The notes beneath the pieces are model-generated. The model saw nothing but the letters and a program-made list of their open reading frames with translations. It did not search any database and had not been told where the DNA came from. Of a stretch of DNA of 64,000 nucleotides, positions 236-27,953 are shown one piece after another. Numbering within the stretch: the first letter of the stretch is position 1; each line of letters begins with the position of its first letter. The stretch lies in the IMG/VR virus record IMGVR_UViG_3300048924_000100, positions 1-64,000 of that record, one strand, 5' to 3'. The position numbers were made by a program, and so were the translations under genes.

Positions 236-244
236 GAGCAAGTC

Positions 245-565
245 ATGCTGAAAGAGAAAACAGAAGATGACGGGAAAACCGAAGCAGAAAAGGAGCGGCA
301 AAGGGAATTAAGGGAGTGGTTGGAGACAAGAAAGCCCCAAGACCTTCTGGGTATGCTTCAGGGGCTTTTTCTTTGCGCCCAGCAAGGCACCACGGTATTG
401 ACGTCAATGCATGTTAACGCTGAGACTGGGGGACGTGAAGACTATGACTTGGAGGTCGACGATTTCCACCTCATAGCACTCGAAATGCACGACCGTTTGG
501 TTGACGCACAAGAAGAAGTCTCAGAGTTGACCTACCAAGTAATAGAGCTCACTGAACGCGATTAA
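245..565 (+). CDS. hypothetical protein
   Basis: 106-aa ORF with GGAG RBS directly after the previous stop. Confidence 0.75.
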   Translation: MLKEKTEDDGKTEAEKERQRELREWLETRKPQDLLGMLQGLFLCAQQGTTVLTSMHVNAETGGREDYDLEVDDFHLIALEMHDRLVDAQEEVSELTYQVIELTERD

Positions 566-584
566 GTTATAGCCCGTCTCAGAT

Positions 585-593
585 CTACATTAC
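585..593 (+). promoter_or_regulatory. putative phiKZ-type early promoter (CTACATTAC)
   Basis: Intergenic motif found 7 times upstream of + strand genes; resembles the phiKZ early consensus TATATTAC. Confidence 0.65.
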
Positions 594-637
594 TAACTCG
601 CAATATAACGCAATACTTTTTAAGTAAGGGAATTGGT

Positions 638-4874: not shown

Positions 4875-4969
4875 CCCGTTATACCCTGGGGTAGTCTAAC
4901 TACCCCTTTCACCGCTGTACCCACTTACCAGAAACCATTCGGTCTTCTGAAACTATTGGAGTAGTAAAC

Positions 4970-5533
4970 ATGGCTAGTCTTTTTCGTACCCGTGAGTTGT
5001 TGGAATCTTTCCCTAGTCGCAGTGTGACTGTGGAGAGTGCCGCAATCGTTAACAGCAAGAACGATCTGTTGATTCGTTTTGTTATCGACTTCGGCGTTAA
5101 TGGTCGTCTTGCTCGTAATACCACGATCAAGATTGATCCAACTGATCTGTTGCTTTCTACCAAGGCGCTCAAAGCTTACGAGCACACCTTGTTTGAAATC
5201 ATCGGCATGTTCGAAGACATGCTGCATTGGGTGACCAAGTCCGATGCGGCTAACACCGCTGATCTGTTGAACCCATCACCTGAGAACATCTTCAATCGGG
5301 TGCTGTGCGAAGAGAAACCGTTAATGTTCCATGCTGTGCGTTTGCGTAAGCATATGGTTTTCTCCATGTTCGGTGAGAACCTGTACGACGCAGACATCCG
5401 GGTTGATTATAACCAGGAAGCCGGCATGCGCATGTTTACCGACAAGATCCATTCCTTGGTCGACTCTATTCGTGACCACCTCAACGCAATTGAAAAATTG
5501 CCAATGAACAAACTCTTGCAGGGAGCAAAATAA
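4970..5533 (+). CDS. hypothetical protein
   Basis: 187 aa, GGAG RBS. Confidence 0.75.
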   Translation: MASLFRTRELLESFPSRSVTVESAAIVNSKNDLLIRFVIDFGVNGRLARNTTIKIDPTDLLLSTKALKAYEHTLFEIIGMFEDMLHWVTKSDAANTADLLNPSPENIFNRVLCEEKPLMFHAVRLRKHMVFSMFGENLYDADIRVDYNQEAGMRMFTDKIHSLVDSIRDHLNAIEKLPMNKLLQGAK

Positions 5534-5997
5534 TGCGTAAGGTATTTTTGGGTCTGTTGTGCGTCGTTTCGTTCCACGCCTTTGCTGGCGAGATGCTGGA
5601 ATGTGAGAGCCGTGGTTACGCTGCTTCGGCAGATGACATGGACAAGATTGATCAGCAACCTCGTCATAGCGAGTTCCTGGTTGAGAAAGATAAGGTTATC
5701 CAGGTAGCCGTTGGTCGTGCGTTCTACGCGGCGGAACCAGAAGACTTTGGCTTCGAGAAGGATGTATTGACCTTCTACAACCGTCACGCTAACCAAGTGC
5801 TGTACATCTACAAGAGTAATGGCAAGACTGAGGTGGGGGTAAGCGCCCTTAACAAAGATTCGGATGATCTTTATCTGGACAAGGACGAGTTTACGCAATG
5901 TGGTTTTAACGAAAGCCGACGCGGTGTTGCTTTGAAGACATCGTTCACCATGCACAGCCGGAGAGTAGATCCTGCTCTCCCGGTGTTCACTTTTTGA
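5533..5997 (+). CDS. exported protein with Sec signal peptide
   Basis: MRKVFLGLLCVVSFHAFA|G signal; TAATG overlap with the upstream gene. Confidence 0.75.
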   Translation: MRKVFLGLLCVVSFHAFAGEMLECESRGYAASADDMDKIDQQPRHSEFLVEKDKVIQVAVGRAFYAAEPEDFGFEKDVLTFYNRHANQVLYIYKSNGKTEVGVSALNKDSDDLYLDKDEFTQCGFNESRRGVALKTSFTMHSRRVDPALPVFTF

Positions 5998-6007
5998 GGA
6001 GATTGCA

Positions 6008-6388
6008 ATGCCACTTTATTACCAAGGTGACTTAGACAAAGACCTGGCCTCTCTGGAAGGTCTTGACTACGTCGATGCTATCAAGAGTTTGTGCCAGCAG
6101 TTTGCATACGGTGCGATCCAACAGATAGTACTCGACCGTCAGGGGTACGACGAGTTTGCTAAACGTAACCTCCCGGCAATTCTGGCGTTTGCTGATAGCG
6201 TCGGGGTCAAAGAGTTCTGCCGGGTGGTCCAGATACTGTGGGCTGAGCAAGCCAAGCTCAACAACTATCCAATGATCGGTGCATTGGACTGTTCATGTGA
6301 TGGTCCTGGTCAGGCTGAACGGGAGCTGGCTGAAATAAGGAAGAAGCGGGGGCAGGGTTCTGTCCATACCTCTAACACCTTACACTGA
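6008..6388 (+). CDS. hypothetical protein
   Basis: GAGGAG RBS, 126 aa. Confidence 0.75.
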   Translation: MPLYYQGDLDKDLASLEGLDYVDAIKSLCQQFAYGAIQQIVLDRQGYDEFAKRNLPAILAFADSVGVKEFCRVVQILWAEQAKLNNYPMIGALDCSCDGPGQAERELAEIRKKRGQGSVHTSNTLH

Positions 6389-6398
6389 GGAAAGAGCA

Positions 6399-6869
6399 AT
6401 GGGTAACGGTATTTTTCTGGGTACGTCGGTTATTAACGGGGTACCTACCCTCTTTCAGTACACAATGCAACCCAATGACCCGGTTGTTATTGTGGAACTG
6501 TACAACCCGTCCAAAGATGATCTGGTTCCTTCGGCGCCAGTGATTGATCGCGATCGGTTCAAACCGGGTACCTACGAGTCGCCACTTCGGCGGCATCTCA
6601 AGGATACCGGAGTTATCTCTGAGGGCTCAGTAGACAGCCTTGGACACGCGTACCTCAACCAAGCAATCGCTGAACAGGTTCAGAAATTGGGGCAGGAACA
6701 GTGGGCAGTAGTTCTTGCTGAGCACGGTGAACCCCTCCCGGAAAATTGGGACGTGATAGTTAAAAGCAATGTAACGATGTTTCTAGAAAGTCCGGATACA
6801 GCTCGTCGTCTTGTTGAGCGAGTATCGGAAGATGCTGTCGTAAAGATTATTGTTCCAGGCAAGGAGTAA
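6399..6869 (+). CDS. hypothetical protein
   Basis: GAGG RBS, 156 aa, operonic spacing. Confidence 0.75.
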   Translation: MGNGIFLGTSVINGVPTLFQYTMQPNDPVVIVELYNPSKDDLVPSAPVIDRDRFKPGTYESPLRRHLKDTGVISEGSVDSLGHAYLNQAIAEQVQKLGQEQWAVVLAEHGEPLPENWDVIVKSNVTMFLESPDTARRLVERVSEDAVVKIIVPGKE

Positions 6870-10405: not shown

Positions 10406-10455
10406 TACTGTGAATTACATTGTTTATATCGAAACCCAGCTATGGAGATTCACCC

Positions 10456-12153
10456 ATGTACATGCAACTCTCTAACAACGGTCATACTGACGCCACTCGT
10501 CGCAATACACAAGACATCGTCGAAGACGTAATGATGGATGTCCGCGACGCCGTTGTAGCCACCATGGGTCCAAACGGCAAACTCTCTGCTATCACCGTCG
10601 GTACTTCTGTGAAGGTAACCAAAGACGGCGTTACGGTTGCGAAGAGCCTGAAGTTTGTTAACCCGTTCGAAGAAGCGGTTAACCGCATCATTACTGAACC
10701 TGCTGTCAAAACCGACGTCGAGTGCGGTGACGGCACCACTACCACCATCCTGCTGACCTCCGAGCTGTATCGCCTGTACAGCCAGTTCCCTAACTATCGC
10801 GAACGCAAGTTCATCGACATGCTGGGTAACAAGATCATTGATCAACTCAGCCGTATGTCGATCACCGTAACCAACGACAGTCCAGAGCTGTACAATCTGG
10901 CCCTGACGTCCTCTAACGGCGACGAGGCGCTTGCTACGGTCATCACCAATATCTATCACGCTGCTGGTGATAAGTACCCTGAGATCGAGCTCAAGGAAGG
11001 CCTGGGTGGCGAGGACCAGATCGTCACTACAGACGGCCTGCTGATGAACCTGATCTACAGTAACCCATCGTTCAGCAAGAACGGTAACGGTACTGCGTCG
11101 GAGTTCACCGACTTCTACCCGATCGTTATCGACGACAACATCCGTAACGTTGATCCTCAGGTACTGGGGCCTATGCTCAAGCAACTGTTGGATCGTACTG
11201 AAGACAGCGCTGGAACGTTCCTGCTGATTGCTCGTTCTTTCGATAACGCTATCAACAGCATGATCCTGCAAATCAACAACCAGCTGAAGCGTCCAGCGTT
11301 TATCTGTGCACAGACCAACTTCGGCGGTTCCGTGGGTACCTTGCTGATGCAGGATCTCTCGGTGCAGTTGAATGCAAACATGGTCAAAGTGTTGTCTGAC
11401 ATCGTGTTCGCTGATTTGAACAAGTGCCAGGATCATCTGACCATCGGTTCGACGCGTTCTGTTTTCGTTCCGTCTATTCTGCCAACCATCGAGCGCATTG
11501 CTCGTCAGGTAGAGTCGATTGAACAGGAGCTTAACAGCTACGAACGTGGTGAGCGTTTCAGCATGCGTGCTCGTTTCAACGAGAAGCGTTTGCGTGATCT
11601 GAAGGGTGAGCTGGTTACCGTGTTTGTGGGTGGCGAAACTCAGTCTGAGATCAAGGAACGTATCGACCGTTTCGAAGACGTGTCGAAAGCAGTCAAGTCG
11701 GCGCTGGTTAACGGGATCCTGCCTGGTGTGGGGAGTGCTCTGGTAACCGCTGGTATGTTTGCTATCAGCGAACTGTCTGAGGAAGATGAAAAAGACCCAG
11801 TGTTCGCTCAGATCATTGAGGTCATGGAAGAAGTGGTATTCTCCCAGTACATCTTACTGATGGGCGACATGCTGGTACCCGTGGATATTCCTGTTACGAA
11901 AAGACTGGACGCCCTCCGTCGGGTTCGCAAGCAGATTGCTGGTAACGTAATGGATATGGATCACCCTAATCCAATTCCTGCGGTCAACCTGCGTGATAAC
12001 ACCCGAGGGTCTCCGCGTGAGCTGGGTATCTTCGACACGGCGTATGCTTCGATCACTGCATTGCGTGGTGGTATGGCGACTGCTAAAACCTTGGCCAGTC
12101 TCGATAGCATCTTGATCGGGGACAAACTGGCTGCGGTAAACGTTCAGTCTTAA
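10456..12153 (+). CDS. groEL: phage GroEL-like chaperonin (Cpn60)
   Basis: TMGPNG, VTKDGVTVAK, GDGTTTT, VGGETQSEIKERIDRFED and GILPGVG motifs; GGAG RBS before ATG 10456. Confidence 0.95.
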   Translation: MYMQLSNNGHTDATRRNTQDIVEDVMMDVRDAVVATMGPNGKLSAITVGTSVKVTKDGVTVAKSLKFVNPFEEAVNRIITEPAVKTDVECGDGTTTTILLTSELYRLYSQFPNYRERKFIDMLGNKIIDQLSRMSITVTNDSPELYNLALTSSNGDEALATVITNIYHAAGDKYPEIELKEGLGGEDQIVTTDGLLMNLIYSNPSFSKNGNGTASEFTDFYPIVIDDNIRNVDPQVLGPMLKQLLDRTEDSAGTFLLIARSFDNAINSMILQINNQLKRPAFICAQTNFGGSVGTLLMQDLSVQLNANMVKVLSDIVFADLNKCQDHLTIGSTRSVFVPSILPTIERIARQVESIEQELNSYERGERFSMRARFNEKRLRDLKGELVTVFVGGETQSEIKERIDRFEDVSKAVKSALVNGILPGVGSALVTAGMFAISELSEEDEKDPVFAQIIEVMEEVVFSQYILLMGDMLVPVDIPVTKRLDALRRVRKQIAGNVMDMDHPNPIPAVNLRDNTRGSPRELGIFDTAYASITALRGGMATAKTLASLDSILIGDKLAAVNVQS

Positions 12154-13235: not shown

Positions 13236-13808
13236 ATGACCGCACAACTAAAAGCTGCAATTACGGCAACGGCTGTAATGGACGAAGACGAGTACGCACT
13301 GGTGTGCCGTGCTTTGGACCCGTCATTTGTTGACCATTTCCATACCCTGGGGGTTATGAAAACCGTACTGCGTGAAATGGTGTATGGGATCGACCACCTG
13401 CGTGATCTGGTCGAGCATCCTGAATGCCCTGCCAATAAGACGCTGGTAACGGTTGACCTGGATCACTACAAACTGGAATCATTCTTCCTGTTTGAGCAAC
13501 TGTTCCGGGCCACTAACAACGAGACCTGGAAGATCAAGCTGCCCACTCCCGATGTTAAGAAATCTCTCACCGACTTCTTCGAGAGACGTTACATCGAAAC
13601 GTTCCACTTCATAATGGAGCGGTTGGGTCTTGAAGAGCTGGAGTTCATGGTGGACAAGATCAGGTTCTCGGTTGAGTTCAATGAACTGATTCCTGACAGC
13701 AAGCTGTTCATCTTCCACTTCACTAACCTGGATACAAAGGAAAGTGTAAACCTGCCGTTTGGACGTCGTCGTACACAACACTCCTTAAAGGTCAAACGAA
13801 ATGATTGA
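13236..13808 (+). CDS. hypothetical protein (paralog of 14066-14629)
   Basis: TAAGGAG RBS; blocks shared with the 14066 ORF. Confidence 0.8.
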   Translation: MTAQLKAAITATAVMDEDEYALVCRALDPSFVDHFHTLGVMKTVLREMVYGIDHLRDLVEHPECPANKTLVTVDLDHYKLESFFLFEQLFRATNNETWKIKLPTPDVKKSLTDFFERRYIETFHFIMERLGLEELEFMVDKIRFSVEFNELIPDSKLFIFHFTNLDTKESVNLPFGRRRTQHSLKVKRND

Positions 13809-14065: not shown

Positions 14066-14629
14066 ATGAGTATAGCACTACTGAAGATGGAGGATTACAA
14101 TGGACTGAGATCTATTTCTACCCCTACGCTTGAAAGTAAACGTCTGGGGTATTTCAAGCGCATCTTGAACGTAGAGTTCGTGGACACCTTTCTGAAGTTC
14201 ATACCGGACGTCAGGAAGCTCCAGGAGTTTGTCTACGCGATCGACTGCTTGACAGAAATTAGCCGGAGCAGTTCATTTCCTTCTGGTCGCATGCTGCAAA
14301 GCGTCGACATCACTGAGAAGGCGGCGGTCAAGTTCAATGAGTTACGTTGGTTAACGCGTGATCAGTCTTTCTTGGGATGCCAAGTCAGTGCTGACACCGC
14401 TGAGTACATTGAAGAGTTTTTCAGTTACGAGTACCCACGCTTGTTCGGTGAGTTGTTTGATAAATCTCGCCTTCCATTCGCCACCTTCGCACTCGACGGT
14501 GTGTGGTACAACTTGACTTTCAACCGTAGCTTCAACAAACTAAGAACGCACTCTGCGATCAAGTTGATTAGCGCGGATCGAAGCAAGGAAGTGTATTTAC
14601 CTTTCCTTAGATCACGTACCGGGGTCTAA
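14066..14629 (+). CDS. hypothetical protein (paralog of 13236-13808)
   Basis: 187 aa; shared blocks. Confidence 0.75.
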   Translation: MSIALLKMEDYNGLRSISTPTLESKRLGYFKRILNVEFVDTFLKFIPDVRKLQEFVYAIDCLTEISRSSSFPSGRMLQSVDITEKAAVKFNELRWLTRDQSFLGCQVSADTAEYIEEFFSYEYPRLFGELFDKSRLPFATFALDGVWYNLTFNRSFNKLRTHSAIKLISADRSKEVYLPFLRSRTGV

Positions 14630-14634
14630 GCGCT

Positions 14635-14672
14635 TATTACCCTTACTAGCGACATTGCTAGTAAGGGTAATA
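14635..14672 (+). terminator. intrinsic terminator
   Basis: 16-bp perfect stem tattacccttactagc/gctagtaagggtaata followed by a T-rich tract. Confidence 0.8.
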
Positions 14673-14731
14673 TGTTTTCTTTTTTATACCGCTGTAACTT
14701 TGTAACGTACTACTAAAACAAGGAGTAACAC

Positions 14732-16231
14732 ATGTCATTACTAAATGCAAACGAAGCCACCTACATCAAACGGGCTCGTATGACATCTGCTTTCTTTCGC
14801 AAGATCGGGCAACCCGATGAGATGATAAACGTTATCGGCAGTTATGGGGATGCCGAGATCGCTGATACCTTTGCGCCTAAAGACGGGGCACCGGGTGAAG
14901 CGTACGTTGTTGGTAACGTGCTTTACATCTGGGATGCCGAACAGGGGTTCTGGATCTGTGGTGGTGAGATCGGGGATAAGTGGGAGCGTGTTCATCCTCA
15001 CAACATCCTCGAAGCCAATCGTCCTGGTCTCAAAGCTGACCTGCTCCATGAAGCTGAAATGAAGGCGTGGGTGCCAGCTGCTGACAGGACCGGTGTAGTC
15101 TGGTTCATCGATCATGTCTACACATGGGACGAGATGTATACGTGCTACAGGAAGGTCGGACCTATGGTAGACCTCAAGGGTAGCACTACTGACCCAGCCA
15201 AGGTAACCGACGACTTCTTGCACGAGCTCTACATGTCAGACGTACGGGCTAACTACCAGGGTACGTTTGAAGCGTGGAAGCTACAGAACCACGACATCAG
15301 TGGGTTGTTGAAAAAGGCTACTGGTACCGAGGGTCTTCCTTCTGCAATAGCACCAGTGCGCGAAACTGCTCTGACAAACGAGGAGATCCTGGCAAAGCAT
15401 TTCTCATTAGACGTCGGGGCTGGTTACGGCGGAACCTACGGGGAATGGTGCTCTCAGAATGGCGACCTCAATGCCGTTCTGCGTAGTGCGTCTGGTTACA
15501 CTGCACAGGACCCCGATCACCTGGAATACGTACGCCGTCTGGAAGAGCAACGTATGCGGATCCATCAACGGGACATATTGGCAGACGCCAAGGAACACCC
15601 ATCTCTGGATGACGTGTCTTCGTTGCTGGAAGGTGCTCTACAGAAGCTTGAGGGTGAAGAAAGTGATGCTGCTTTCAAAGCACTCGATGCCTTGAAGAAG
15701 GTAAAGGTCGATCTTCGTCGTAAGCGTCGTAACACCTGGCTGCGTTGGTTGCTCTTCTGGGCTATCGTGGGTGGTGCGGTTTACGGTCTGTATAAGTGGT
15801 TGCCCACCCAAGTGGTAAGCGGGCATTACACTGTGCCGAAGACTTGCTCCGTTCCTTTCGGCAACGGTTTGATTCAGGGTATGCGTTACTACAACTACTC
15901 TTACAAGTCGTTGTTCGGTGTTCACTTTACTCTGGAAAGCACTGTACGGGAAGAGACCGACGTTACCAAGAACGGTCAGGAGTTCACTATCTTTGGCTTG
16001 TCTCCTCGCAATGAGGCTGCAACCGAAGAAGAGATGGCACTGGCAGACAAGGCATTGAAGGCTGCCGAAGTGGAAGTGGAAGGTGCGCCTAAACCACCTA
16101 AAGGCAAATGGTGGCGTATAAACGTGTGGTCTAGTGACAAAGGTACTCAGTGGATGAAGCCAGCCGAGTTGTATCTGTTCGCCTCTGAGAAGTACACAAC
16201 CATGGTCGCTTATAAGGACTTCTGTAAATGA
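14732..16231 (+). CDS. single-pass membrane protein with tail-fibre-like N-terminal repeats
   Basis: RRKRR followed by TM WLRWLLFWAIVGGAVYGLYKWL; N-terminal motifs match repeats in the 23696-27943 fibre. Confidence 0.75.
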   Translation: MSLLNANEATYIKRARMTSAFFRKIGQPDEMINVIGSYGDAEIADTFAPKDGAPGEAYVVGNVLYIWDAEQGFWICGGEIGDKWERVHPHNILEANRPGLKADLLHEAEMKAWVPAADRTGVVWFIDHVYTWDEMYTCYRKVGPMVDLKGSTTDPAKVTDDFLHELYMSDVRANYQGTFEAWKLQNHDISGLLKKATGTEGLPSAIAPVRETALTNEEILAKHFSLDVGAGYGGTYGEWCSQNGDLNAVLRSASGYTAQDPDHLEYVRRLEEQRMRIHQRDILADAKEHPSLDDVSSLLEGALQKLEGEESDAAFKALDALKKVKVDLRRKRRNTWLRWLLFWAIVGGAVYGLYKWLPTQVVSGHYTVPKTCSVPFGNGLIQGMRYYNYSYKSLFGVHFTLESTVREETDVTKNGQEFTIFGLSPRNEAATEEEMALADKALKAAEVEVEGAPKPPKGKWWRINVWSSDKGTQWMKPAELYLFASEKYTTMVAYKDFCK

Positions 16232-16857
16232 AAAGTATCAAACATGTAAACGTGGGAACCGTGGGTCACATTGACCACGGTCGTGTGTTGCAGTACAGAG
16301 GACCGCGAGGGTACAAGCCAAATATGGCTGACATCTCGTGGAGTACACCGCACATAAAGGTTTACCACAATCCGTTCACACCGGAGTTCATCAACTGCTT
16401 CAACGGGTTGCTGTATGTAGCTGGTCGTGTTGTTCATGACATGGACATCTACGCAGAGGTAGAGACCCCTTCCGGGAGGGGTGCTCTTATCGACGGCCTT
16501 ACCATTCTCGACTACCCGGGTATCATCCACGACGAACCTCCACAGTTCATGAGGGGGAGCAAAGGTGGTATTCACGGCATCGGTAACCTCACCAGTAAGT
16601 CGTCCTTGCTATTGGATGAATTTATCGCGCAATCCGAGATCGGGTACCTCTCGAACCAAACAAAGTTAATTCGTCGAGAGGGTAACAAACAGCTACTCGT
16701 GGCTGACCGTAAGTCGATCATTCCTTCGCGGCGTGCAATCCAGTGGGCAATTGAAATGCGTAACTGGAAGGACAAGGATCTGTTCAAGCTGTTGGGTATG
16801 AAGCAATTCACTCCTGAGCAGTTGGCTGCACTGAGATGGGAACGTAAGGATGGCTAA
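16228..16857 (+). CDS. hypothetical protein with EF-Tu-like N-terminal peptide
   Basis: KHVNVGTVGHIDHGR; ATGA overlap with the upstream gene. Confidence 0.75.
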   Translation: MKSIKHVNVGTVGHIDHGRVLQYRGPRGYKPNMADISWSTPHIKVYHNPFTPEFINCFNGLLYVAGRVVHDMDIYAEVETPSGRGALIDGLTILDYPGIIHDEPPQFMRGSKGGIHGIGNLTSKSSLLLDEFIAQSEIGYLSNQTKLIRREGNKQLLVADRKSIIPSRRAIQWAIEMRNWKDKDLFKLLGMKQFTPEQLAALRWERKDG

Positions 16858-17041
16858 AGATTTAAAGCAAGAGATGGAACACAACATCGCCCTTTACAGG
16901 GAGTTTGGTCCTAAGCCTGGTGACTCCTTTGCGGTGTTAGCGGGTATAGGCACTGTTGTAATGCAATCCAAGACCTTGCCTTCTGGCTTGATCATTGAAC
17001 CTTTTGAAAACATGGAGAAAGAAAATGGGCGATCGTCCTAA
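16850..17041 (+). CDS. small hypothetical protein
   Basis: 63 aa, overlapping operonic arrangement. Confidence 0.55.
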   Translation: MAKDLKQEMEHNIALYREFGPKPGDSFAVLAGIGTVVMQSKTLPSGLIIEPFENMEKENGRSS

Positions 17042-17612
17042 CCCTAACAAGGGTCGCAGCATGGTTCCAGTTAACCACAAGCTGAAGTACACCGAAGAAG
17101 ACATGGTTAAGGCCATGGAGTTTGCCAAGCGTAATGCTCGCGGTAACCTGATGAAAGAACTCGGTCTTACCGAACTCAACTCCGGTATCGGTAGCACTCC
17201 GTCGTCTAACTGGTTTGCCAAGGGTGAGCAGGACGACTTCCCTGAGCTGGTTAATCAGGACCGTGCAAGTCTGTGTTTGGGCAAGCTGTCTGATGATGAG
17301 ATGGCGACTCTGGTCTTCATGCAGGGTGACGTTGATAAAGAAACCGACATGCGCCTGTCGATTGCCGCCATGCAGTCCGGTCAGCAGTACTACTCGAAGA
17401 TCGCCGCAGTAACGGGTGGTAAGGAACGCATCCGCTGGTTGTCGCGTCACCTGGAACTGTCTCTGCAACGTCAACGGACCCAACGTACCGCTATCTGGAA
17501 CTACATCATCGATACGTACGGTGAGTGTGGTGGCGAGGCTTCGATTCTTGAGGCCTGTGAGAAGTTGGGATTGTCTAAGGAATACGCCATGGCTCGTATG
17601 CACATCGCGTAA
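17025..17612 (+). CDS. hypothetical protein (MGDRPNPN...)
   Basis: GGAG RBS before ATG 17025; strong codon bias. Confidence 0.75.
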   Translation: MGDRPNPNKGRSMVPVNHKLKYTEEDMVKAMEFAKRNARGNLMKELGLTELNSGIGSTPSSNWFAKGEQDDFPELVNQDRASLCLGKLSDDEMATLVFMQGDVDKETDMRLSIAAMQSGQQYYSKIAAVTGGKERIRWLSRHLELSLQRQRTQRTAIWNYIIDTYGECGGEASILEACEKLGLSKEYAMARMHIA

Positions 17613-17625
17613 AACTGTAGGAGGA

Positions 17626-18156
17626 ATGATGGAACAAGTACCCAAGTCGGTAAAGAGTCGTTTGCTAGGACAGCTCCCACTTTACCACATTAGCTTTAAC
17701 GGCGCTCTGGAGGGTCTGTGGACGCCTGGGGAACAAGCAGGCTTCGATGTACCGGGTGAAGCTGAAGACAGCTCCTGGGCGTATCCTGAAGCGCCTATGA
17801 CAGCTATTTCAGTTGGCCCAACCGTGGAAGATTGTTTCCGTGGTGTTTTCCCTAATGTGGCTCATTTCTTTGAGAAGGATAAACTCCCCCACATTAACTT
17901 CTACGTTTATAGCCCGATGTTTGTGGGTGTTGAACGGGTAGTGCTTCCCAAGACGTTGACGGAAGACGGCTGGGTGTGGGATGCGCATGTGACGCATGAG
18001 TATCGGATTCTCGATCCAGTGCACATGAAGGTCGTGGGTGAGATTCAGGTGATGAACACTAACAGTTCGCCTCTCTTGAAAACTAACCCCTACAACAATT
18101 TGCACAACCCCAGGGAAAGTGTAGGGCCTGCGTCTATTCGCTGCAAGTGGGTGTAA
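17626..18156 (+). CDS. hypothetical protein, possible ADP-ribosyltransferase-like fold
   Basis: AGGAGG RBS; LYHIS...ISVGPTVEDC...FYVY...DAHVTHEY layout. Confidence 0.5.
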   Translation: MMEQVPKSVKSRLLGQLPLYHISFNGALEGLWTPGEQAGFDVPGEAEDSSWAYPEAPMTAISVGPTVEDCFRGVFPNVAHFFEKDKLPHINFYVYSPMFVGVERVVLPKTLTEDGWVWDAHVTHEYRILDPVHMKVVGEIQVMNTNSSPLLKTNPYNNLHNPRESVGPASIRCKWV

Positions 18157-18158
18157 AT

Positions 18159-18461
18159 ATGAACGGTCATGATTTTGTTCCACCCATCCTCGACAAGATT
18201 ACCAAGGCATTGGATGAAGCGTATCGCCTGGGTGGGACGAACAACTACAAGCTGCATCTGCAACAGACGCAAGAGGTTCTTTTCTCGCTGGCGCCTGAAC
18301 TGATCGCTCTGGTAGAGACCAAGCACGTTCTGGAGAACGTTGTTGCTCCTAACGAACCAGTCGTGCCTGGTGCTGAGCCAATGAAGCTGGTGTCGTTGGC
18401 TATTCAGATTTCGAACATCCGTAAAAGGAGGGTTACCCCTGATGAAAGAGAACAAGGATAA
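18159..18461 (+). CDS. hypothetical protein
   Basis: ATG just after the upstream stop. Confidence 0.7.
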   Translation: MNGHDFVPPILDKITKALDEAYRLGGTNNYKLHLQQTQEVLFSLAPELIALVETKHVLENVVAPNEPVVPGAEPMKLVSLAIQISNIRKRRVTPDEREQG

Positions 18462-18469
18462 ACACCAGG

Positions 18470-19057
18470 ATGATAACTAAAGGACTCAGCTTTACCGACA
18501 ACTTCCCATTGGCTGATGTTGGAGAGGCGCAATTCAGAGTTAACCGCAACACAGGTGAAATCGTTACAGCCAATACACACTGGCGGTTGCGACAAGAGAC
18601 CGTGCTTATTCGCCACGGTCTTCGTGAACCTATCCGGTTCTACGGTGTAACACAAACTGCTCACGGTAATCTGATTGCCATGAGTGATGGGCATCAAACG
18701 CGTTATTACTGGATCAATTCAACTGGTCGTCGTGATACGTATTTGATACAGGGCTCTTCGTTTACATTTGAAGAAGCCTGGGAACACTTGTTCGAAGCAC
18801 TGGTCTTGGATGGTCGTGCTACATCCATTGCCTTGTACAGTCGCATCAGTTTCCTCTTCATTTGGTATTTCAGTCAGATCAAGCCTAAACCGGCATACCT
18901 GGCTACAGAAGGTTCATGGAGAGGTGTTAAGAAAGAAGTCTTGTTCGAATGGCTACCTGACATCGGACAAAGAGCAGTACAGGTAACTATCGCTGGTTAT
19001 AAACCCGTTGCAGTACCCCTGGCGGATCACCCGCTTGTAGGCTTGCTGCGCAAATAA
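18470..19057 (+). CDS. hypothetical protein
   Basis: 195-aa operonic ORF. Confidence 0.7.
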   Translation: MITKGLSFTDNFPLADVGEAQFRVNRNTGEIVTANTHWRLRQETVLIRHGLREPIRFYGVTQTAHGNLIAMSDGHQTRYYWINSTGRRDTYLIQGSSFTFEEAWEHLFEALVLDGRATSIALYSRISFLFIWYFSQIKPKPAYLATEGSWRGVKKEVLFEWLPDIGQRAVQVTIAGYKPVAVPLADHPLVGLLRK

Positions 19058-19074
19058 GTTAAGAGGCAAATGAA

Positions 19075-19539
19075 ATGACAAACGCACAACGTAAACCAGT
19101 ATTGAGCATCACCAACATCAACGGCAACGGTCAACAACTTCAGGTGACCTCTTACGAGCACCAGACCACTTACATTGTGTCCGGCGGTGATCTCAAGCTG
19201 TATGGCGGTACCATGTACCTGATTCAAAAGCCTTCTCACAGTTACGAGGAGGCTGTGGAGATGTTGTTCAAGCACCTCGTAATGGACGATCGTGAACACG
19301 CGATCAACTACTACAACCTGGTAAGTAGCTTCTTCATCGGGCACTTCGGCAATGCAGACCGCGACAATTTCAAAGCAACACTGACCAGCCGTTGGCACAA
19401 ACTGTTCCTGCACGTAGAACTGGAACGTCGTCCTGGTCTGGATGCATCGCTGATGTTCTTCCACGTCCACGAGAAAGAGATGTTGGTTTCTCTGGAGTCT
19501 CACCCGATCGTTTACATCTTGGCCAATGAAAAGCAATAA
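19075..19539 (+). CDS. hypothetical protein
   Basis: 154-aa operonic ORF. Confidence 0.75.
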   Translation: MTNAQRKPVLSITNINGNGQQLQVTSYEHQTTYIVSGGDLKLYGGTMYLIQKPSHSYEEAVEMLFKHLVMDDREHAINYYNLVSSFFIGHFGNADRDNFKATLTSRWHKLFLHVELERRPGLDASLMFFHVHEKEMLVSLESHPIVYILANEKQ

Positions 19540-19552
19540 GGGGGGATACAAC

Positions 19553-19777
19553 ATGCCAGTAGTTAAGCAGAGTCTTGAAGAGCGTCTGGAAAGGCTGGTT
19601 GAGCGTTGTAATTACGATCGCACACCTATCACGTTGTTCTTCGATCCTACCGACGGACAGTGGCATGGTGCTCTGGACGACCTTACCGGGCATATCGCGG
19701 GTAGCCTGGTAGCTGAAGAACACTCCGGTGACTTCGATGATGTACTGGAAGCACTGGAAGCAGAGCTAGAACTCTAA
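19553..19777 (+). CDS. small acidic hypothetical protein
   Basis: G-rich RBS before ATG 19553; acidic C-terminus. Confidence 0.7.
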   Translation: MPVVKQSLEERLERLVERCNYDRTPITLFFDPTDGQWHGALDDLTGHIAGSLVAEEHSGDFDDVLEALEAELEL

Positions 19778-19782
19778 GTAGC

Positions 19783-19822
19783 TATAACTACCCTCACCCC
19801 GCAAAGGGTGAGGGTAGTTATA
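19783..19822. terminator. bidirectional terminator between convergent genes
   Basis: 17-bp perfect stem, loop CGCAAA (reverse complement TTTGCG). Confidence 0.85.
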
Positions 19823-19844: not shown

Positions 19845-21080
19845 TTACGACACCAATTCCAACACCGGTCTCCAGCCGTAGCCAGGATAAGGTGTATCAT
19901 CGGGTTCATACCACACACCTGCAAATCCAGGATAGCCCCGCAGCAAAGTACCACCGCTTGTACTGGCCTCCTGACAGATGATCAACTCACCGCTACTGGT
20001 TCCGCCTAACCACCCCATATCGGTTGGGCTGTTGCTTGCCCATGCTTCGCCTTGATACTCGGTAGTAACTCGGAGGAAATAGTTATCGTAGTCCCCGCCG
20101 CGTGTACCTGTAGGGTTGTTACCATCGCCACCCGTCATTAGCCTTACTTTGTAGGTATGGCCCCCGAAGGTGATAGTCGTACCACCGTAGATCAAATTAA
20201 GTGCGTTAAGCTGTGACCAAGATAGCGCGTTATGGGTGATCAGCTTAGGCATGTAGAACGTCTTGCCAGCATCAACGAACTTCAGCCAAGGCGTGTTGTC
20301 ATTGATAAGCGTAGCCGTTGTCAACCCTACAGCCGCCGCTAAGGCAGAACCAGTAATGAAGTTACTCGCCAGTACCTCACCCCTATAAGGGGTAGGAGGA
20401 ATGGTAGACTTCTTCACAAGGATAGGTCTCCAGCTATACCACAGCTGAGGACTGTTAGGGTCGACATACCACATGCCAGTTACTTGCGCATAGGGAGTCC
20501 CACCACCAGAGTCACTACCACGGGTAATGTGACCCGCCGAGCAAATAGTCCCCACACCTAATTCAGTGGAACCATCAAACGTAGCTACGCCCAGCATAGG
20601 ACCGGTGTAGTCTCCCCAGTACTCAGCATTAGGTGGGAAACCAGCGCGGTCCAAGCTGTCATACACGTTATACATGTAGCGGTTCCATTCGCCGCCGGAG
20701 TTTGCTGCACCGATCCCACCGGTAGCACTTATAGCACCGGTCATCAGCCGAACAATATAAATCTCACCGCCGATGGTAGTTTCTGCACCCCCACTAGATA
20801 ACCCGAGAGCGTTAAGGTCTTCCCAGCAGACGTTGTATCTGAGCGGTTTCTTGGCAATGTACAACTCCAGGCCATTGTCTTCGATGAAGTGCAACCAACC
20901 GGATTCAGAGTTAAACGCAATACCAGCGGTCAACCCCATTTTTGCAGCAAGCACATCACCGTAAACAAAATCAGATGAATGGGCCACCCCTTTAAAGGGC
21001 GTACTTGGTGGGAATGGGAGATCGCTATCGTCCCCACCACCGACCTGTGCATTTAAGACGCTTAGTAACGATTCAAGCAT
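19845..21080 (-). CDS. virion (tail-associated) structural protein, two tandem homologous domains
   Basis: WLxF...YIAKKP...VRLMTG...WRPxL domain occurs twice; located in the tail-fibre module; paralog of 22358-23629. Confidence 0.7.
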   Translation of the reverse strand: MLESLLSVLNAQVGGGDDSDLPFPPSTPFKGVAHSSDFVYGDVLAAKMGLTAGIAFNSESGWLHFIEDNGLELYIAKKPLRYNVCWEDLNALGLSSGGAETTIGGEIYIVRLMTGAISATGGIGAANSGGEWNRYMYNVYDSLDRAGFPPNAEYWGDYTGPMLGVATFDGSTELGVGTICSAGHITRGSDSGGGTPYAQVTGMWYVDPNSPQLWYSWRPILVKKSTIPPTPYRGEVLASNFITGSALAAAVGLTTATLINDNTPWLKFVDAGKTFYMPKLITHNALSWSQLNALNLIYGGTTITFGGHTYKVRLMTGGDGNNPTGTRGGDYDNYFLRVTTEYQGEAWASNSPTDMGWLGGTSSGELIICQEASTSGGTLLRGYPGFAGVWYEPDDTPYPGYGWRPVLELVS

Positions 21081-21148
21081 GGTGTTACTCCTACTAACAC
21101 GGTCTCCCTGTTATAAAAGAAAGCCTCCCCGAAGGGAGGTCACTGTCA

Positions 21149-21613
21149 CTAAGCTGCGAAGCTACGCATTGGCGTCTTCGGAGTGGTTGGATTGGTAGCG
21201 ATCCGGTAGAGGTTAACGCCTGTCATGATGACCATGCGTTTCCACCGGGTTACTTCCAACACTTCCATGGACTCCTTCAGGATGCGGTCGATCTCTTTAC
21301 GGTCAACAGCAACGTCCGTAGGAACGCCGTTAATGACCTGGGTGATCTTGTACGTCTGACACAGCTTGTCATGCAGGGTGCATGCTTGACTGTATTCCCC
21401 CATCGGTGGAAGCAACCACCACAGCAGGCGAGGAATAGTGGCACCGTCGGTTTTAAAACCCGTTTCCACATCAACGTACTTGTCCGATCCTTCAACCCCG
21501 ATGTAATAGCGGAACCCAGGTATAGTGTCCCAGATATCCTTGCCGTAATACGTACTGGCAGGTTTGTCATACTGAAGCTGTTCGACTGCGCTGAACCGTG
21601 TAAACGTACTCAT
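21149..21613 (-). CDS. DUF1353-family protein
   Basis: GFKTDGATIPR..WWL.PP.G.Y..A..LHD and DRIL.E.M signature. Confidence 0.85.
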   Translation of the reverse strand: MSTFTRFSAVEQLQYDKPASTYYGKDIWDTIPGFRYYIGVEGSDKYVDVETGFKTDGATIPRLLWWLLPPMGEYSQACTLHDKLCQTYKITQVINGVPTDVAVDRKEIDRILKESMEVLEVTRWKRMVIMTGVNLYRIATNPTTPKTPMRSFAA

Positions 21614-21667
21614 CGTTCAAACTCCTGCAAGCTGGGAATCCTCCCCCTTTCGAGGGAGGTAAGTGGA

Positions 21668-22321
21668 TTACAAGGTGAAGAACTCAGCAGGAGGTGCTGG
21701 TAGCTCTTCCATGGTAGTTGCTTTAGCGATATCGTCCTTGTACTTCCAGGCCGTCTTGTAACCTACCAGCACTTGGACAAAGGTCTTATCGGCCAACGCC
21801 ACCATTTGTGCAGCGTTCAGATCGACCGAAACGTTTTCCCAGACACGGAATTCGAAGGCCATATCTTGACCAGCAGCGACCAGCTCTTTTGCGATGGTAC
21901 GCAAGTCAGAGATGTTACCGCGGTCAGTTGTTCTAACCTGAACGTGGTAAATGGTATTCTCGTCGAACTGATAAGGGAACCCTTTGGTAAAGGCATTCAG
22001 CTGCAGGGTAGCCGCCTGTGCCGTCAGGAGGGCTTTCTTTTCAGCCAACTTGCTGGAGGCTTCACCCGGATCAAACGAGCGCACAGTCCAGGTCTGGTGC
22101 CACACACCGTCGATCAGTTCTGGACGGCCTTCGAGAACCACATCACCCGCAGGCTTTGAAGTCGGCTGTACAACTTCGATACCGAAGCTGACCAGTAACT
22201 CCGAGTCCACTGTAGCACCGAACAGGGTGTTAGGGGCGTAAAGGGGCATGTCAGTAAGGAACAGGGGGTAAGTGCCAGATCCAACATCGATCAGGCGGGT
22301 CAAACGCGTAACCGTCGTCAT
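21668..22321 (-). CDS. tail fibre assembly/chaperone-like protein (DUF4376-like)
   Basis: EGRPELIDGVWHQTWTV; C-terminal ENVSVDLNAAQMVAL...KDDIAKATTMEEL; close to the fibre gene. Confidence 0.65.
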   Translation of the reverse strand: MTTVTRLTRLIDVGSGTYPLFLTDMPLYAPNTLFGATVDSELLVSFGIEVVQPTSKPAGDVVLEGRPELIDGVWHQTWTVRSFDPGEASSKLAEKKALLTAQAATLQLNAFTKGFPYQFDENTIYHVQVRTTDRGNISDLRTIAKELVAAGQDMAFEFRVWENVSVDLNAAQMVALADKTFVQVLVGYKTAWKYKDDIAKATTMEELPAPPAEFFTL

Positions 22322-22357
22322 GATAATTCCTTGTAAACAAAATCAATTGAAAGTGGA

Positions 22358-23629
22358 TTAGCCAACCAGTTCTAGTACTGGCTTCCAACCATAGCCGGCG
22401 TGAGTAGTGTTAGGGATCTGATACCAGATACCATCGAAGCCAGGGTAACCCCGAGTAGCCCAACCGCCGTAAGGAGTGTAAATCTCTTGGAGGATAGACA
22501 ACTCACCCGAACCAGCACCGCCACCCCAACCCAGGTCAGTTCCGGGGTCGTAAGCACCCCAAGCGTCACCAATAGGGGTGTACAGGTTAGTCACCCTCAT
22601 CAGGTAGTTACTGTACTCACCACCAGCCGCGTCACCAGGGTCAGCGTTGAGACCTGTCATCAGTCGAACCTTATACGTCAGCCCACCGATAACAATTGTC
22701 TTCGATCCATAAACCGCACCCACTGCGTCTAACTGCTCATGGGTAATGTTAACCATCAGCGTTTTCTTGGCGATGTAGAACGTCTTACCAGCATCAACGA
22801 ACTTCAGCCAGGTAGAGTCGTCGTTCAGCACAGTCCCATCGACCAACCCAATCGCAGCTGCCAGATCGGTAGCTGTAATGAGAGTAGCTTCCCCTTTAAA
22901 CGGTGTAACTGGGATCGGTGCAGTGGTGCCTTTCTCATACAGCATAGGACGCCAGCCGACGAAGTCCGCCATGTCGGGTGGGTTGGTATACCAGACACCC
23001 ATGATGTTGGGCGGTGAAGTGCCAGGGTACTGAACACCACGCAACGCGTGCCCACCACCTTGCCCGCCAGAGATTGGGTTCTTCACGTGACTCATAGCCC
23101 CCAAAGTGGTGAGCTTATCTTCAGACCCTAGTGGAATCCCCAGCATGTGGCTATCGTAATGACCCCATACTTCTTTACTCGCTGGGAGTTCGTCTACCCG
23201 TTCTCCGTCATACACGTTGTACATGTAGCGGTTCCACTGACCCCCGGCGTTGACAGGGTTTTCAGGGTTGAGGAAGTTAGCCGCCATCCCTGTCATGAAA
23301 TCAACGATGAACGTTTTACCTAACAGGTTGATTTCTTTACCCGTTTGTGCCGTATCGACAGCACTCCACGGCAGCGCGTAGCGTATAGGCTTCTTAGCGA
23401 TGTAGATGTTGTAACCATTATCCTCAACGAAGTGTAACCAACCCGATTCGTTGTTGACCGGGATACCGTCGGTCAGCCCTATTTGAGCTGCCAGGTTTGT
23501 ACCGGTGATAAAGTCTTTAGACCGTACCACACCCTTAAACGGGGTACCTGCCGGAAAGGGCAGGTCATGATCGTCCTCTTCCCCCGCATCAGACCCTTTA
23601 AACAGAAGTGCTTCGATCATAGTACCCAT
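22358..23629 (-). CDS. virion (tail-associated) structural protein, paralog of 19845-21080
   Basis: Same two-domain architecture, e.g. RGYPGF.G.WY and GYGW[RK]PVLELV. Confidence 0.7.
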   Translation of the reverse strand: MGTMIEALLFKGSDAGEEDDHDLPFPAGTPFKGVVRSKDFITGTNLAAQIGLTDGIPVNNESGWLHFVEDNGYNIYIAKKPIRYALPWSAVDTAQTGKEINLLGKTFIVDFMTGMAANFLNPENPVNAGGQWNRYMYNVYDGERVDELPASKEVWGHYDSHMLGIPLGSEDKLTTLGAMSHVKNPISGGQGGGHALRGVQYPGTSPPNIMGVWYTNPPDMADFVGWRPMLYEKGTTAPIPVTPFKGEATLITATDLAAAIGLVDGTVLNDDSTWLKFVDAGKTFYIAKKTLMVNITHEQLDAVGAVYGSKTIVIGGLTYKVRLMTGLNADPGDAAGGEYSNYLMRVTNLYTPIGDAWGAYDPGTDLGWGGGAGSGELSILQEIYTPYGGWATRGYPGFDGIWYQIPNTTHAGYGWKPVLELVG

Positions 23630-23695
23630 CCAAACACATAAGTGAGAGCTAACTGCACAGAAGCCCCCAAGATGGAGGCTCCCATGTATTAGCAG

Positions 23696-26600
23696 TTAAG
23701 GAACCACAGCACCAGGCGAACCGACCCACTCGACACCATCCCAGGTGAAGGTTAATTGTGTACGACTACCCGTCAGCGGAGGTGGACTACCACCGTGCCA
23801 GGCCAGAACAGTAGCGCCAGTTGCAGCGAAGGTGATCACACCAGCAGCACCGGTGATCTTGAACACCACCACCAACCCACGGGCACTAGCTCCTTTCGGA
23901 CCATCGGCCAGCGTAATGGTTTTGGCCGTTGCAGCGGAGTTATCCACTCTAACGAACTCAGCAGTAGCAGGGTCAACCGTTGCAGTTGCACTGATGTTGC
24001 TGATTGCCAAGTCATAACGATCGAACGATACCCAGGCAAGACCTTTACGAAGGTACTGCTTACCGTCGTTTGGTGCGTCGGTAAGCCGTGCGTTGATCTG
24101 ACCTTGCGCTTTACCGAACGCCGCGAGGATCGTGTCGGCTGCTGCAATAGCAGCGTTAGACCCAACGGCATACCCAGTCAGTGTATTCGTCCGAACCCGA
24201 GCTGCTGTAAAGTAAAGGTTAGTGGATCCTTCCACAACAGCGTCAGTAGTACCCGGAGAAGCCGTCAGTGCAACGTACACGCTACCGGTCCAGCGGAACT
24301 GACCGTTGGTTGCGAGGGAGATGTAAATCTTCCCTGTTTCACCAACTCCAGGGAAAGCCGCTTGGTTAGCAAACTCCAGCACGTCGTCGACATAACTCGG
24401 CAACTGACCAGCAGGAATCTTACCCGCTACCAGTGTCGCAACGGTGACGCCGAGATCCGCGGTAGCCACACCACCAAGGCTAGCCAGAGTAGGAGCAGCG
24501 TAGACGCTCCACGTATGGTCACCCTTACGCAGGTAGAGGTTGGAGTCCACCGGGGTATCAGCAAACCCAGGCACGAAGGCGTTGATCTGCGCCTGCACCT
24601 TACCGAACGCTGTGATCACCGTGTCAGTGCCCAAAACAGCACTGCTAGCGGCAAGGCTCAACCCGGTTAGAGGTGACGAACGAACACGAGCAGCCGAGAA
24701 GTAGAGATTGGTAGTACCCTCTACAACTGCATCCGATGTACCAGGCGAAGCTACCAGTGCGACGTAAACAGTACCCGACCAGCGATACTGAGTGTTGGTG
24801 TCCATGGCGATATAGATCTTGCCAGTTTCACCAGTGCCAGGGAACGCCGCTTGGTTAGCGAATTCCAAGACATCGTCTACGTAGCTAGGAAGCTGACCTG
24901 CTGGAACAACCCCACCAACAAGCGTTGCAACCGTAACGCCCAATGCCGAAGTCGGCACACCGCCCAGAGAGGCCAGCGTAGGAGCGTTATACGTTGCCCA
25001 GGAACCAATAGGCTGGCCATTGGCGCGCACACGCATGTACGGAGCACCGTCAGCCGGAGGTTCAGCGATCTGGGTCGGGAATACCAACTCAATCCACTCA
25101 CCCTCGTTGGTGGAAGAACCGGACTTCAGGGAACGGACGTACAGCTTGCCGTTAACCATGTTCGGTGCTTCGTCAACTGGCAGGACGATCCAGTCATTAC
25201 CCAGACGTACCGCTTTACCGAAGGACAGCAGAGGCGAGTTAACATCACCCGCTACCAGCCGACCCCAATACACCCAACCATCCACAGTCGAGTTGTAGTA
25301 GACCTTGAAGGTATCCGATACAGCCCAGTCACCAGGGTTACCAGTGAAGCCCAACGGCGGCGCATCAACGCCAGCAGGCAGCGTGATCCAGGACGAACCC
25401 TTATCACCCTTGTCGCCTTTCTTGCCGATACCGATTGGACCTGGGACACCTTGCACACCCTGAGGACCGCGAACCAGACCGATGTCGATCCACTTGCCGC
25501 CTTCAGCAGTAGTCCAGATAGCCAGGTTGTTACCAACCAGATAGCCATCACCCAGGTTACCCGTCGGATGAGCGGTAGCCAGGTCAGCCAGAGTGTTGTA
25601 TGCACCCAAGATCTGGATGGACGTACCTGGATCACCTTTCTCGCCGTCTTTACCAGTAGGACCCTCAGGACCGATGATATCGAATGGACCTTCCCACAGA
25701 CCGTCGACCATTACGTACAACAGCTTACTGCTTTCGATGAAGTAACCGTCACCGTCTACAGCGCCCTGATCAGGACGAGGCAGGTACTGAACAGCTGGAG
25801 TCGTACCACGTAGGTTTACACCGTGACCTTGAGCACCACGGTCGCCCTTAGCACCAACTGGACCGCCGTCATACCAGATGCCGCCATGCGCCAACTGAAT
25901 ATGGTTATTCAAGTCGATGTAGGCTTTACCGGAGTTGCTTGCGGCATCAGGGATGGTTTGATCACCAGGGGTCAGAACCTTGATGATGTCGATGGATGTA
26001 CCGTTGGCACCATCAGCACCCGGGAGACCGTCATTACCCTTGAACGAACCCAGCACAATCCAGTTACCGCCAACAAAGGCGTACAGGGTGTTGGTATCAC
26101 GAGCCGAGTAGACGTCCTGTTCAGCAGGCGTGGCAGGCAGTGCGGTGTAAGTAGCTACCGAGCCTTTAACGATGATGTTGGTACCGTTAGTACCGTTAGC
26201 CCCTTGCAGCGAAGCCAGGAACTCGTTGGCTTCACCGGTAAAGCCCGCGTCCAACCAAACTTGGTAAGCCGACTTGCCTTCGAAGCGACCGATGTCATGC
26301 CATGTGCCGTCATTGTAGACCCACAGGTGACCTGTATCAGCTGTCACGTAACCGTCTTGCTCAACTACACCTTGGATGTTCCCCAGGGAGTTTTGGTTGG
26401 TGACAGTACCCTTGACGTTCAGGTTCTGACCACGGTCGCCTTTAGGACCAGGAACAACCGACTTCAGTGATTCCAACCAGGCTTGCAGATCACCACCGAA
26501 ACCATCCGCAACAGCCAGCTCATAAGCCGACAGACCACCAGCGGAGCCGAGGTCAACGTACTGTGCTTGAGTGGTTACCCAAACGTACAGGTGACTACCA

Positions 26601-27943: not shown

Positions 27944-27953
27944 GGCTCAACCT

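Follow-up and report, generated by a model that had tools for sequence, protein, structure and literature searches.

Abortive-infection toxins and interbacterial toxins are known to target elongation factor Tu (EF-Tu), which to our knowledge every phage needs. Host proteins are the substrates of the phage T4 ADP-ribosyltransferases (ARTs) Alt, ModA and ModB; Alt is carried packaged in the phage head, and Depping and colleagues reportedly described in 2005 that ModB modifies EF-Tu. The Salmonella toxin TreTu, an ART of the Rhs/type VI secretion system kind, is specific for Asp21 in the EF-Tu P-loop, which it ADP-ribosylates (PMC9825190), and ARTs are frequent in jumbo phages, where they are often packaged in the virion (PMC9503650). 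Small jumbo-phage proteins annotated 'putative elongation factor Tu' have been described in Machinavirus and Erskinevirus (ChrisDB gp215 and pSal-SNUABM-04 gp195; phrog_12626). Here we compare with these systems a plus-strand gene unit, genes A to I, from a metagenomic jumbo-phage contig of 214 kb (IMGVR_UViG_3300048924_000100); positions 1 to 64,000 of this IMG/VR record are called the window below, and all coordinates are those of the window unless a locus is named. Two genes of the unit are our main subject: gene B, which carries a short EF-Tu peptide that is almost certainly under selection, and gene E, the product of which probably has an ART fold.

Gene B (16228-16857, 209 amino acids, aa) carries the peptide KHVNVGTVGHIDHGR at its residues 5-19 (16240-16284), and it is this peptide that the Protein Data Bank (PDB), NCBIfam and hhalign comparisons recover. 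Aligning the B family with Salmonella EF-Tu by hhalign gave 15 columns, corresponding to EF-Tu residues 11-25, at 73% identity (E = 1e-7 in a single comparison). The aligned part of EF-Tu is strand beta-1 and the P-loop, and nothing else of B aligns; the PDB matches of B are likewise limited to the residues of the peptide, and the EF-Tu models of NCBIfam, the cut-offs of which are about 450-520 bits, reach 15-16 bits on residues 3-19. The core of the peptide, N8-D16 (16249-16275), ends in the counterpart of EF-Tu Asp21. The family itself is small, with seven cluster representatives among 1.84 billion and 22 members in a larger collection, the long contigs all being about 215-232 kb. Within it, N8, V9, G10, T11, G13, H14 and D16 are invariant in 22/22 sequences, at a mean column identity of 39%. 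The initial annotation had called B an EF-Tu mimic, and of this the EF-Tu-matching peptide under strong selection survives; it is a motif of 9-15 residues, and there is no EF-Tu module.

The Walker A Lys-Thr of EF-Tu is replaced in every one of the 22 family members, B itself reading GHIDHGRV with Arg-Val in this position. B does not contain a complete G1 P-loop of the form GxxxxGK[ST], and none of the Pfam families, GTP_EFTU included, matches it. Since the Lys-Thr is replaced and no alignment extends beyond 15 residues, B is not a homologue of EF-Tu or of the GTPases. Reading B as a whole degenerate G domain, with 'DYPG' as G3 and 'NKQL' as G4, was rejected, these segments being unconserved in the family and the hhalign alignment being confined to its 15 columns. 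The public gene call for this region (P0016, 177 aa) begins B at Met33, so that the motif is left out (16228-16323); residues 1-32 are conserved in homologues, which supports the start at 16228. The AlphaFold2 (AF2) model of B is poor, with a predicted local distance difference test score (pLDDT) of 52 overall and below 50 in the motif region, too poor for a fold search. With low confidence it puts a helix directly after the loop, like the beta-1/P-loop/alpha-1 arrangement, and the loop is usually followed by a basic residue, as GR or SR, or as GK in Pseudomonas phage PaBG. As far as the model can tell, B would be a scaffold of little structure, on which NVGTxGHxD is displayed as a copy of EF-Tu strand beta-1 and the first half of the P-loop.

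Gene E (17626-18156, 176 aa from its ATG) matches phrog_10766, annotated as of unknown function (E = 8e-35), and has homologues in Erwinia phages of the genus Agricanvirus, Klebsiella phage FBKp24, Centimanus, Eowyn, Salmonella phage SA002, Yersinia phage phiR1-37 and others. The AF2 model of E, built from 15 sequences, has a pLDDT of 88 and a predicted template modelling score of 0.84. When this model was compared with 48,161 chains by VIA, at least 44 of the 50 best matches belonged to the ART superfamily, with a best Z of 5.3, in a range (Z < 8) where matches can reflect a common arrangement. TreX, pertussis toxin S1, Tpt1, Arr, scabin, ParT, DarT, diphtheria toxin, TreTu (Z 3.8) and PARPs are among them, along with others. 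A Foldseek search of the PDB gave no match below E = 0.1, the top ones being pertussis toxin S1, Arr, cholera toxin A1 and RES toxins. The signal is weak but coherent, and we consider it probable from these model comparisons that E has an ART fold, in line with the initial description of its product as ART-like.

The candidate catalytic residues of E are H21 (17686-17688), Y95 (17908-17910) and E125 (17998-18000), which are invariant over homologues of 27-67% identity, as are E55, C70, N77, D119 and H121. In the model strand 1 carries H21 and strand 3 carries Y95, and E125 comes immediately ahead of strand 5. This order of His, Tyr and Glu is that of the H-Y-E ARTs, the diphtheria-toxin/PARP clade together with Arr and DarT, and makes the three residues a candidate triad. 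We also take the 'HEYRIL' of E to resemble the Glu-Tyr-Ile/Val signature of the H-Y-E clade. By sequence, none of the solved ARTs is significantly similar to E, a search of the PDB having returned a chance-level match only. The comparison with TreTu is similarly divided. E is small and predicted to be ART-fold, as TreTu is, and B carries a counterpart of the loop GHVDHG of its substrate EF-Tu, with the Asp invariant. However, E and TreTu are not similar in sequence, the His, Tyr and Glu that are invariant in E differ from the unorthodox Arg-based site of the toxin, and TriTu, the immunity protein that accompanies TreTu, is of the lid type and is no substrate mimic. The T4 enzymes are R-S-E enzymes of the Alt/VIP2 family, in which E has no Pfam or PHROGs match; the candidate triad of E is of the H-Y-E type, its invariant strand-1 residue being His and not Arg.

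Matches to the E model in the BFVD database include many uncharacterised jumbo-phage proteins. By these models E would stand for an as yet uncharacterised ART-fold family, whose relatives by sequence or structure occur in jumbo phages of Erwinia, Klebsiella, Yersinia, Salmonella and Pseudomonas. In BFVD the fold is shared by proteins of ~230 aa from Ea35-70, Eowyn and Noxifer (E = 1e-4 to 1e-3) and by a 785-aa protein annotated as an acetyltransferase, which is possibly multidomain, to judge from its size alone. Erwinia phage RAY has a 233-aa protein, gp70, encoded directly upstream of the E homologue gp71, and this may be a paralogue with the E fold. The homologue of E in Yersinia phage phiR1-37, g082, bears the annotation 'phage structural protein' and adjoins the structural gene g081 and a tape-measure/tail-fibre gene.

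The phage of the window belongs to the EL-like group, its gene order round the chaperonin being that of ORF146-152 of Pseudomonas phage EL. The chaperonin, a hallmark of EL/OBP-like phages, is of the GroEL type (10420-12153; phrog_5725, E = 8e-117), and its open reading frame (ORF) as called begins with TTG. No close DNA relative of the region was found among 50,697 phage records by megablast, and we used tblastn to compare it with seven related chaperonin-encoding loci (chaperonin identity 48-77%) and with EL. The C-terminal ~220 aa of A are present in all relatives, at 31% identity even in EL; B lies always directly after A in relatives, and the 4-nt overlap of A and B is kept in all relatives examined (six with gene tables and the locus L005). 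E is present in 6/7 relatives, shifted by about 3 kb in one locus, and sits 0-1.2 kb downstream of B in most. Between B and E, gene C was found in 5/7 relatives (46-73% identity) and D in 4/7, and both are, on sequence conservation, real genes yet optional. After E, gene F was found in 0/7 by tblastn, with a similar-looking 88-aa ORF seen by eye at the same position in L005, while G and H are present in 7/7 and I in 6/7 (31-45% identity); of these last three EL has G only. A separate scan of IMG/VR for E homologues gave 19 loci, and in all 11 of those that also carry A a B-like ORF lies between A and E. The conserved core is A-B-(variable genes)-E and not five fixed genes. Co-conservation, which the initial annotation had proposed to check in EL/OBP-like genomes, thus holds for A, B-like genes and E together, and breaks down for C, D and F and in one relative where E was not found.

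In the B-like proteins that lie between A and E in more divergent loci, the scaffold has changed beyond recognition and NVGTxGHxD persists, located at residue 7, 20, 36, 47, 75, 117, 140, 181 or 227 of the stop-to-stop frame. The residue after the Asp varies (H, W or F), with variants GHIDW, GHIDF, GHRDH and GHCDF, and a degenerate copy, NVGTQLNVD, has its Asp at the same offset. An independent case is locus L069, a contig of 184 kb, where a 188-aa protein (178-744, minus strand) ends in ...YVNVGTIGHIDHGR, so that the motif forms the extreme C-terminus; the last codons of its gene overlap the start of an E-family gene (1-191, minus strand), and an A-family gene lies 3.3 kb upstream. A motif that moves from the N-terminus through the middle to the C-terminus of differing scaffolds fits a portable, selected peptide better than it fits the core of a fold.

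The motif also occurs in jumbo-phage proteins unrelated to B. The first 19 residues of B match phrog_12626, and the Machinavirus and Erskinevirus proteins of that family share with B the peptide KHVNVGTIGHVDH without the Lys-Thr, in a small jumbo-phage protein. These 109-aa proteins, annotated 'putative elongation factor Tu' or 'putative GTPase', are unrelated to B outside the motif, which they carry as KHVNVGTIGHVDHSR at residues 33-48; a 267-aa protein of phage PaBG has the motif too. The neighbourhood of the 109-aa proteins also differs from that of B, consisting of a GNAT acetyltransferase and a macrodomain protein, with no E homologue. In the loci examined, from Machinavirus-type phages of Erwinia and Salmonella (ChrisDB, pSal-SNUABM-04 and Stratton), the motif gene is directly downstream of the GNAT gene, for which ChrisDB and Stratton have the annotation 'ribosomal-protein-alanine acetyltransferase' and pSal-SNUABM-04 has 'putative acetyltransferase'. 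The macrodomain gene follows three to four genes downstream of the motif gene, and then an endolysin gene; the ChrisDB macrodomain matches Pfam Macro at E = 9e-4, below the curated cut-off. ChrisDB gp214-gp218 correspond to 4366-6589 of locus L016, and L018 and L128 are other loci of this type. A candidate second adjacency of B-type and E-type genes, in the Erskinevirus Stratton, was rejected, the 209-aa protein with a weakly E-like fold sitting outside the neighbourhood of the motif gene.

We used a codon-degenerate scan of IMG/VR for NVGT[IVM]GH[IVM]DH as a census of the motif. The scan gave 89 ORFs, of which 33 are full-length and EF-Tu-like (some on contigs of 370-620 kb), nine are partial EF-Tu with at least 60 aa aligned, and 47 have fewer than 60 aa aligned to EF-Tu (39 of these complete, 35-267 aa). 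The 47 come from many unrelated families (loci within L020-L108) and have the motif at any position, as against about 0.05 matches expected by chance from the degeneracy of the pattern and a rough collection size of ~1e11 bases. Some of the short ORFs, however, are host-flank sequence or captured 5' fragments of tuf, 98-99% identical to Salmonella EF-Tu, and the census therefore shows recurrence and does not point to any single explanation.

Gene A (14732-16231, 499 aa) is the remaining member of the conserved core. Its N-terminal ~278 aa are variable and built of tail-fibre-type repeats: residues 26-86 match one repeat of the 1414-aa tail fibre of the window at 41% over 51 aa (BLASTP, E = 1e-4), several weaker matches accompany this one, and the element 'G[YE]xGTxxEW' is common to both proteins. 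The match of A to phrog_13666 is weak (E = 0.03). The number of repeats and the length of the N-terminus vary among relatives, and the EL homologue has no repeats at all. The tail-fibre resemblance is thus real but weak and confined to the hypervariable part, and the view of A as a fibre mimic, which rests on that repeat, is not supported. A conserved fibre architecture is not what the A homologues have in common; their conserved part is a C-terminal module with a hydrophobic helix. In L005 the conservation is restricted to residues 279-499 (91% protein identity), and EL ORF149 aligns at 31%.

This C-terminal part of A, ~220 aa long, consists of a helical, coiled stretch, the sequence RRKRRN, the hydrophobic helix and a domain of about 140 aa, in which the family alignment shows invariant C372 and C498 and a KGxWWRxN motif. 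The helix comprises 22 residues (~335-357; 15734-15802) and is of moderate hydrophobicity, with a Kyte-Doolittle maximum of 1.27; hydrophobicity is greater in the EL and L069 homologues. A is probably a single-pass membrane protein, to judge by its sequence, and the positive-inside rule suggests an orientation with the N-terminus in and the C-terminus out, which would possibly allow a periplasmic disulfide. A search of the PDB with the A-family profile gave no match. We also observed that the 3' module of A (15589-16243) is 88% identical in DNA to 4813-5467 of L005, with flanks at 64-72% and the L005 chaperonin at 55%; that the module is so much more alike than its flanks suggests a recent exchange of it between lineages.

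Another way to view the unit is through the possible relation of B to E. Our leading hypothesis draws on the TreTu precedent (Asp21 of EF-Tu corresponding to Asp16 of B), on the frequent packaging of jumbo-phage ARTs and on the linkage of the two genes, and takes B for a P-loop pseudo-substrate or decoy tied to ADP-ribosylation and E for a candidate enzyme or co-acting effector; as a combined mechanism we regard it as possible, if somewhat doubtful. E would be an effector that uses NAD+, possibly carried in the virion as the annotation of the phiR1-37 homologue would have it. B would be a decoy or pseudo-substrate for an enzyme that recognises the P-loop of EF-Tu, which would be E or else a TreTu-like ART of the host, and the unit would manipulate or protect host translation elongation. 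Any enzymatic activity of E and its target, any contact of B with E or with a host protein, when the unit is expressed and how A is oriented in the membrane are all things that we infer from sequence, models and analogy. In a more general form, the EF-Tu beta-1/P-loop peptide on unrelated small scaffolds would be a recurrent phage decoy against P-loop-modifying enzymes (TreTu-type ARTs), coupled genetically in this clade to an H-Y-E-type ART family not described before, with the same site as its target; this we judge to be improbable. If B-type proteins do act as P-loop decoys, no substrate-peptide mimic of a translation factor would have been found in phages before them, and they would be a lead to as yet undiscovered host enzymes attacking the EF-Tu P-loop during infection. 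What is established is a set of new, uncharacterised families, and their reading as a system is hypothetical. The counter-defence or host-takeover role first proposed for the cassette found no support, as PADLOC, Pfam and NCBIfam gave no family save the 16-residue EF-Tu motif matches of B, and none of the nine proteins A-I matches a PADLOC defence model.

Several observations weigh against the pairing of a decoy with an enzyme. The NVGT part of EF-Tu is a buried strand, which would be odd for a surface decoy, and AF2 gives no confident structure either for B or for its motif region. The structural scores of E are low (Z of 5.3 at best, Foldseek E of 0.1 or more), and the placement of its candidate triad in a pocket is putative. 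Moreover, the genes are found apart. Eight distant E loci, in Erwinia phage RAY, Yersinia phage phiR1-37, Klebsiella phage FBKp24 and others, lack both A and the motif within 6 kb, and among the neighbours of the E homologues in RAY, FBKp24 and phiR1-37 there are no A or B homologues; the E homologues of Agricanvirus have no motif gene within 6 kb. Conversely, a relative of 224 kb (L015/L040) has A-B-C-D and no E was found in it, and the motif proteins of Machinavirus and PaBG have no E homologue nearby. Finally, the loci with A-B-E are syntenic relatives, and their association may therefore be one of inherited gene order and not of function. That B and E each occur without the other is also what one would expect if B were a relic, or a minimal phosphate- or metal-binding loop protein, derived from a translational GTPase. 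The motif would then serve locally in structure or ligand binding, through its Gly-rich loop, its His and Asp and the basic residue at the place of the P-loop Lys, and not as a mimic; E would be an independent effector and the neighbourhood mere inherited synteny. The basic residue that usually follows the loop and the low-confidence helix right behind it agree with such an origin, as do the many phage ORFs that resemble captured N-terminal fragments of EF-Tu, 25-60 aa long. However, the B family lacks the Walker A Lys-Thr, shows no G3 or G4 motif and no alignment past 15 columns, and the shifting position of the motif across scaffolds is better explained by a portable peptide; we consider the relic rather unlikely.

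Two further explanations were considered. The unit might supply accessory proteins for the virion or its assembly, A being a fibre-related structural or membrane-insertion protein, E a non-catalytic ART-like structural protein, and B, C and D assembly factors. The structural block on which the unit converges does include the 1414-aa tail fibre and two phrog_1062 virion proteins, repeats of the fibre recur in A, and g082 and g081 of phiR1-37 carry their structural annotations beside the tape-measure/tail-fibre gene. Against this, the fibre-like part of A is the part that is not conserved, and that E keeps its His, Tyr and Glu invariant even in distant phages argues for a retained active site; a purely structural unit appears unlikely to us. 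Alternatively, there may be no functional system here at all, only small genes, early or middle, that follow one another without being related, as is typical of jumbo-phage accessory regions, with the EF-Tu peptide as a by-product of an ancient capture of the tuf 5' end. Genes C, D and F do come and go, family annotations are absent apart from the short EF-Tu motif matches of B, and host-flank tuf fragments nearly identical to Salmonella EF-Tu do occur in viral contigs. A by-product would hardly be expected to keep a 9-residue core strictly invariant while the rest of B diverged beyond recognition, nor would a chance run of genes keep the A-B overlap in every relative examined. The codon usage of the motif, which differs from that of tuf in our comparison with E. 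coli tufA, further points to conservation at the protein level and counts against this explanation, to which we give little credence overall.

The initial annotation had placed the genes A to E in one coupled unit behind a terminator, and the layout of the region bears out much of this. The Rho-independent terminator that closes the upstream unit (14635-14672) has a 17-bp stem and a T-run, with a folding energy of -26.9 kcal/mol (z = -7.8), and its hairpin is retained in the alignment of related phages with differing stem sequences. Between this terminator and the ribosome-binding site lies the motif GCTGTAACTTTGTAA (14691-14705), which is conserved in 7/8 related loci and may be the promoter of the unit. 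No second exact copy of it occurs in the window, and as a single-copy motif it provides no repeated promoter consensus from which a promoter family could be defined. The start codon of A is 7 nt 3' of the Shine-Dalgarno sequence AAGGAG. The five ORFs overlap or abut as claimed: A and B by 4 nt (ATGA), an overlap that suggests translational coupling, B and C (16850-17041, 63 aa) by 8 nt, and C and D (17025-17612, 195 aa from its ATG) by 17 nt, followed by a gap of 13 nt between D and E.

The tight packing behind the terminator and the conserved motif speaks for one unit, but that unit does not stop at E. Genes F (18159-18461, 100 aa from its ATG), G (18470-19057, 195 aa), H (19075-19539, 154 aa) and I (19526-19777, 83 aa) come after it with gaps or overlaps of at most 17 nt. 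The next strong terminator, a 17-bp hairpin followed by a T-run on the plus strand (19783-19822; -30.7 kcal/mol, z = -6.2), lies where the unit meets the minus-strand structural block. Given this spacing and this terminator, the unit comprises nine genes (14732-19777), with I as the last, and the right limit of 18156 drawn previously is arbitrary.

As for the genes outside the core, none of C, D, F, G, H and I could be assigned to an informative family with Pfam, PHROGs, NCBIfam or PADLOC, and the same is true of A. C has no match in Pfam or PHROGs. D matches phrog_36034, annotated as of unknown function (E = 2e-7), its homologues are all hypothetical proteins, and a sequence search of the PDB with D gave no match. 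G and H are paralogous (31% identity), and EL ORF150 belongs to the same family. The corresponding region of EL, ORF146-ORF152, resembles that of the window in having the chaperonin, two or three small genes, the A-family ORF149 (31%, in the C-terminal module) and a G-family gene. In contrast to the unit described here, homologues of B, C, D and E are absent from it, and ORF149 is without the fibre-like repeats at the N-terminus.

Elsewhere, the window encodes a helicase, a UvsX-like recombinase and the 1414-aa tail-fibre protein. The latter contains many internal repeats, of a type that is present once in A, and belongs to the convergent minus-strand structural block (19845-28532), together with the two phrog_1062 virion proteins, which are paralogous, a DUF1353 protein and a DUF4376 protein. 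The plus-strand block upstream of the unit includes a GNAT acetyltransferase (PF00583; 2289-2759) and a protein with an HNH endonuclease domain (PF13392; 7531-8364). Upstream of A lie two tandem paralogues (13236-13808, 190 aa, and 14066-14629, 187 aa), which are about 25% identical when compared via relatives. Duplication is also seen in the G/H family, of which the relative L010 has three or four copies.

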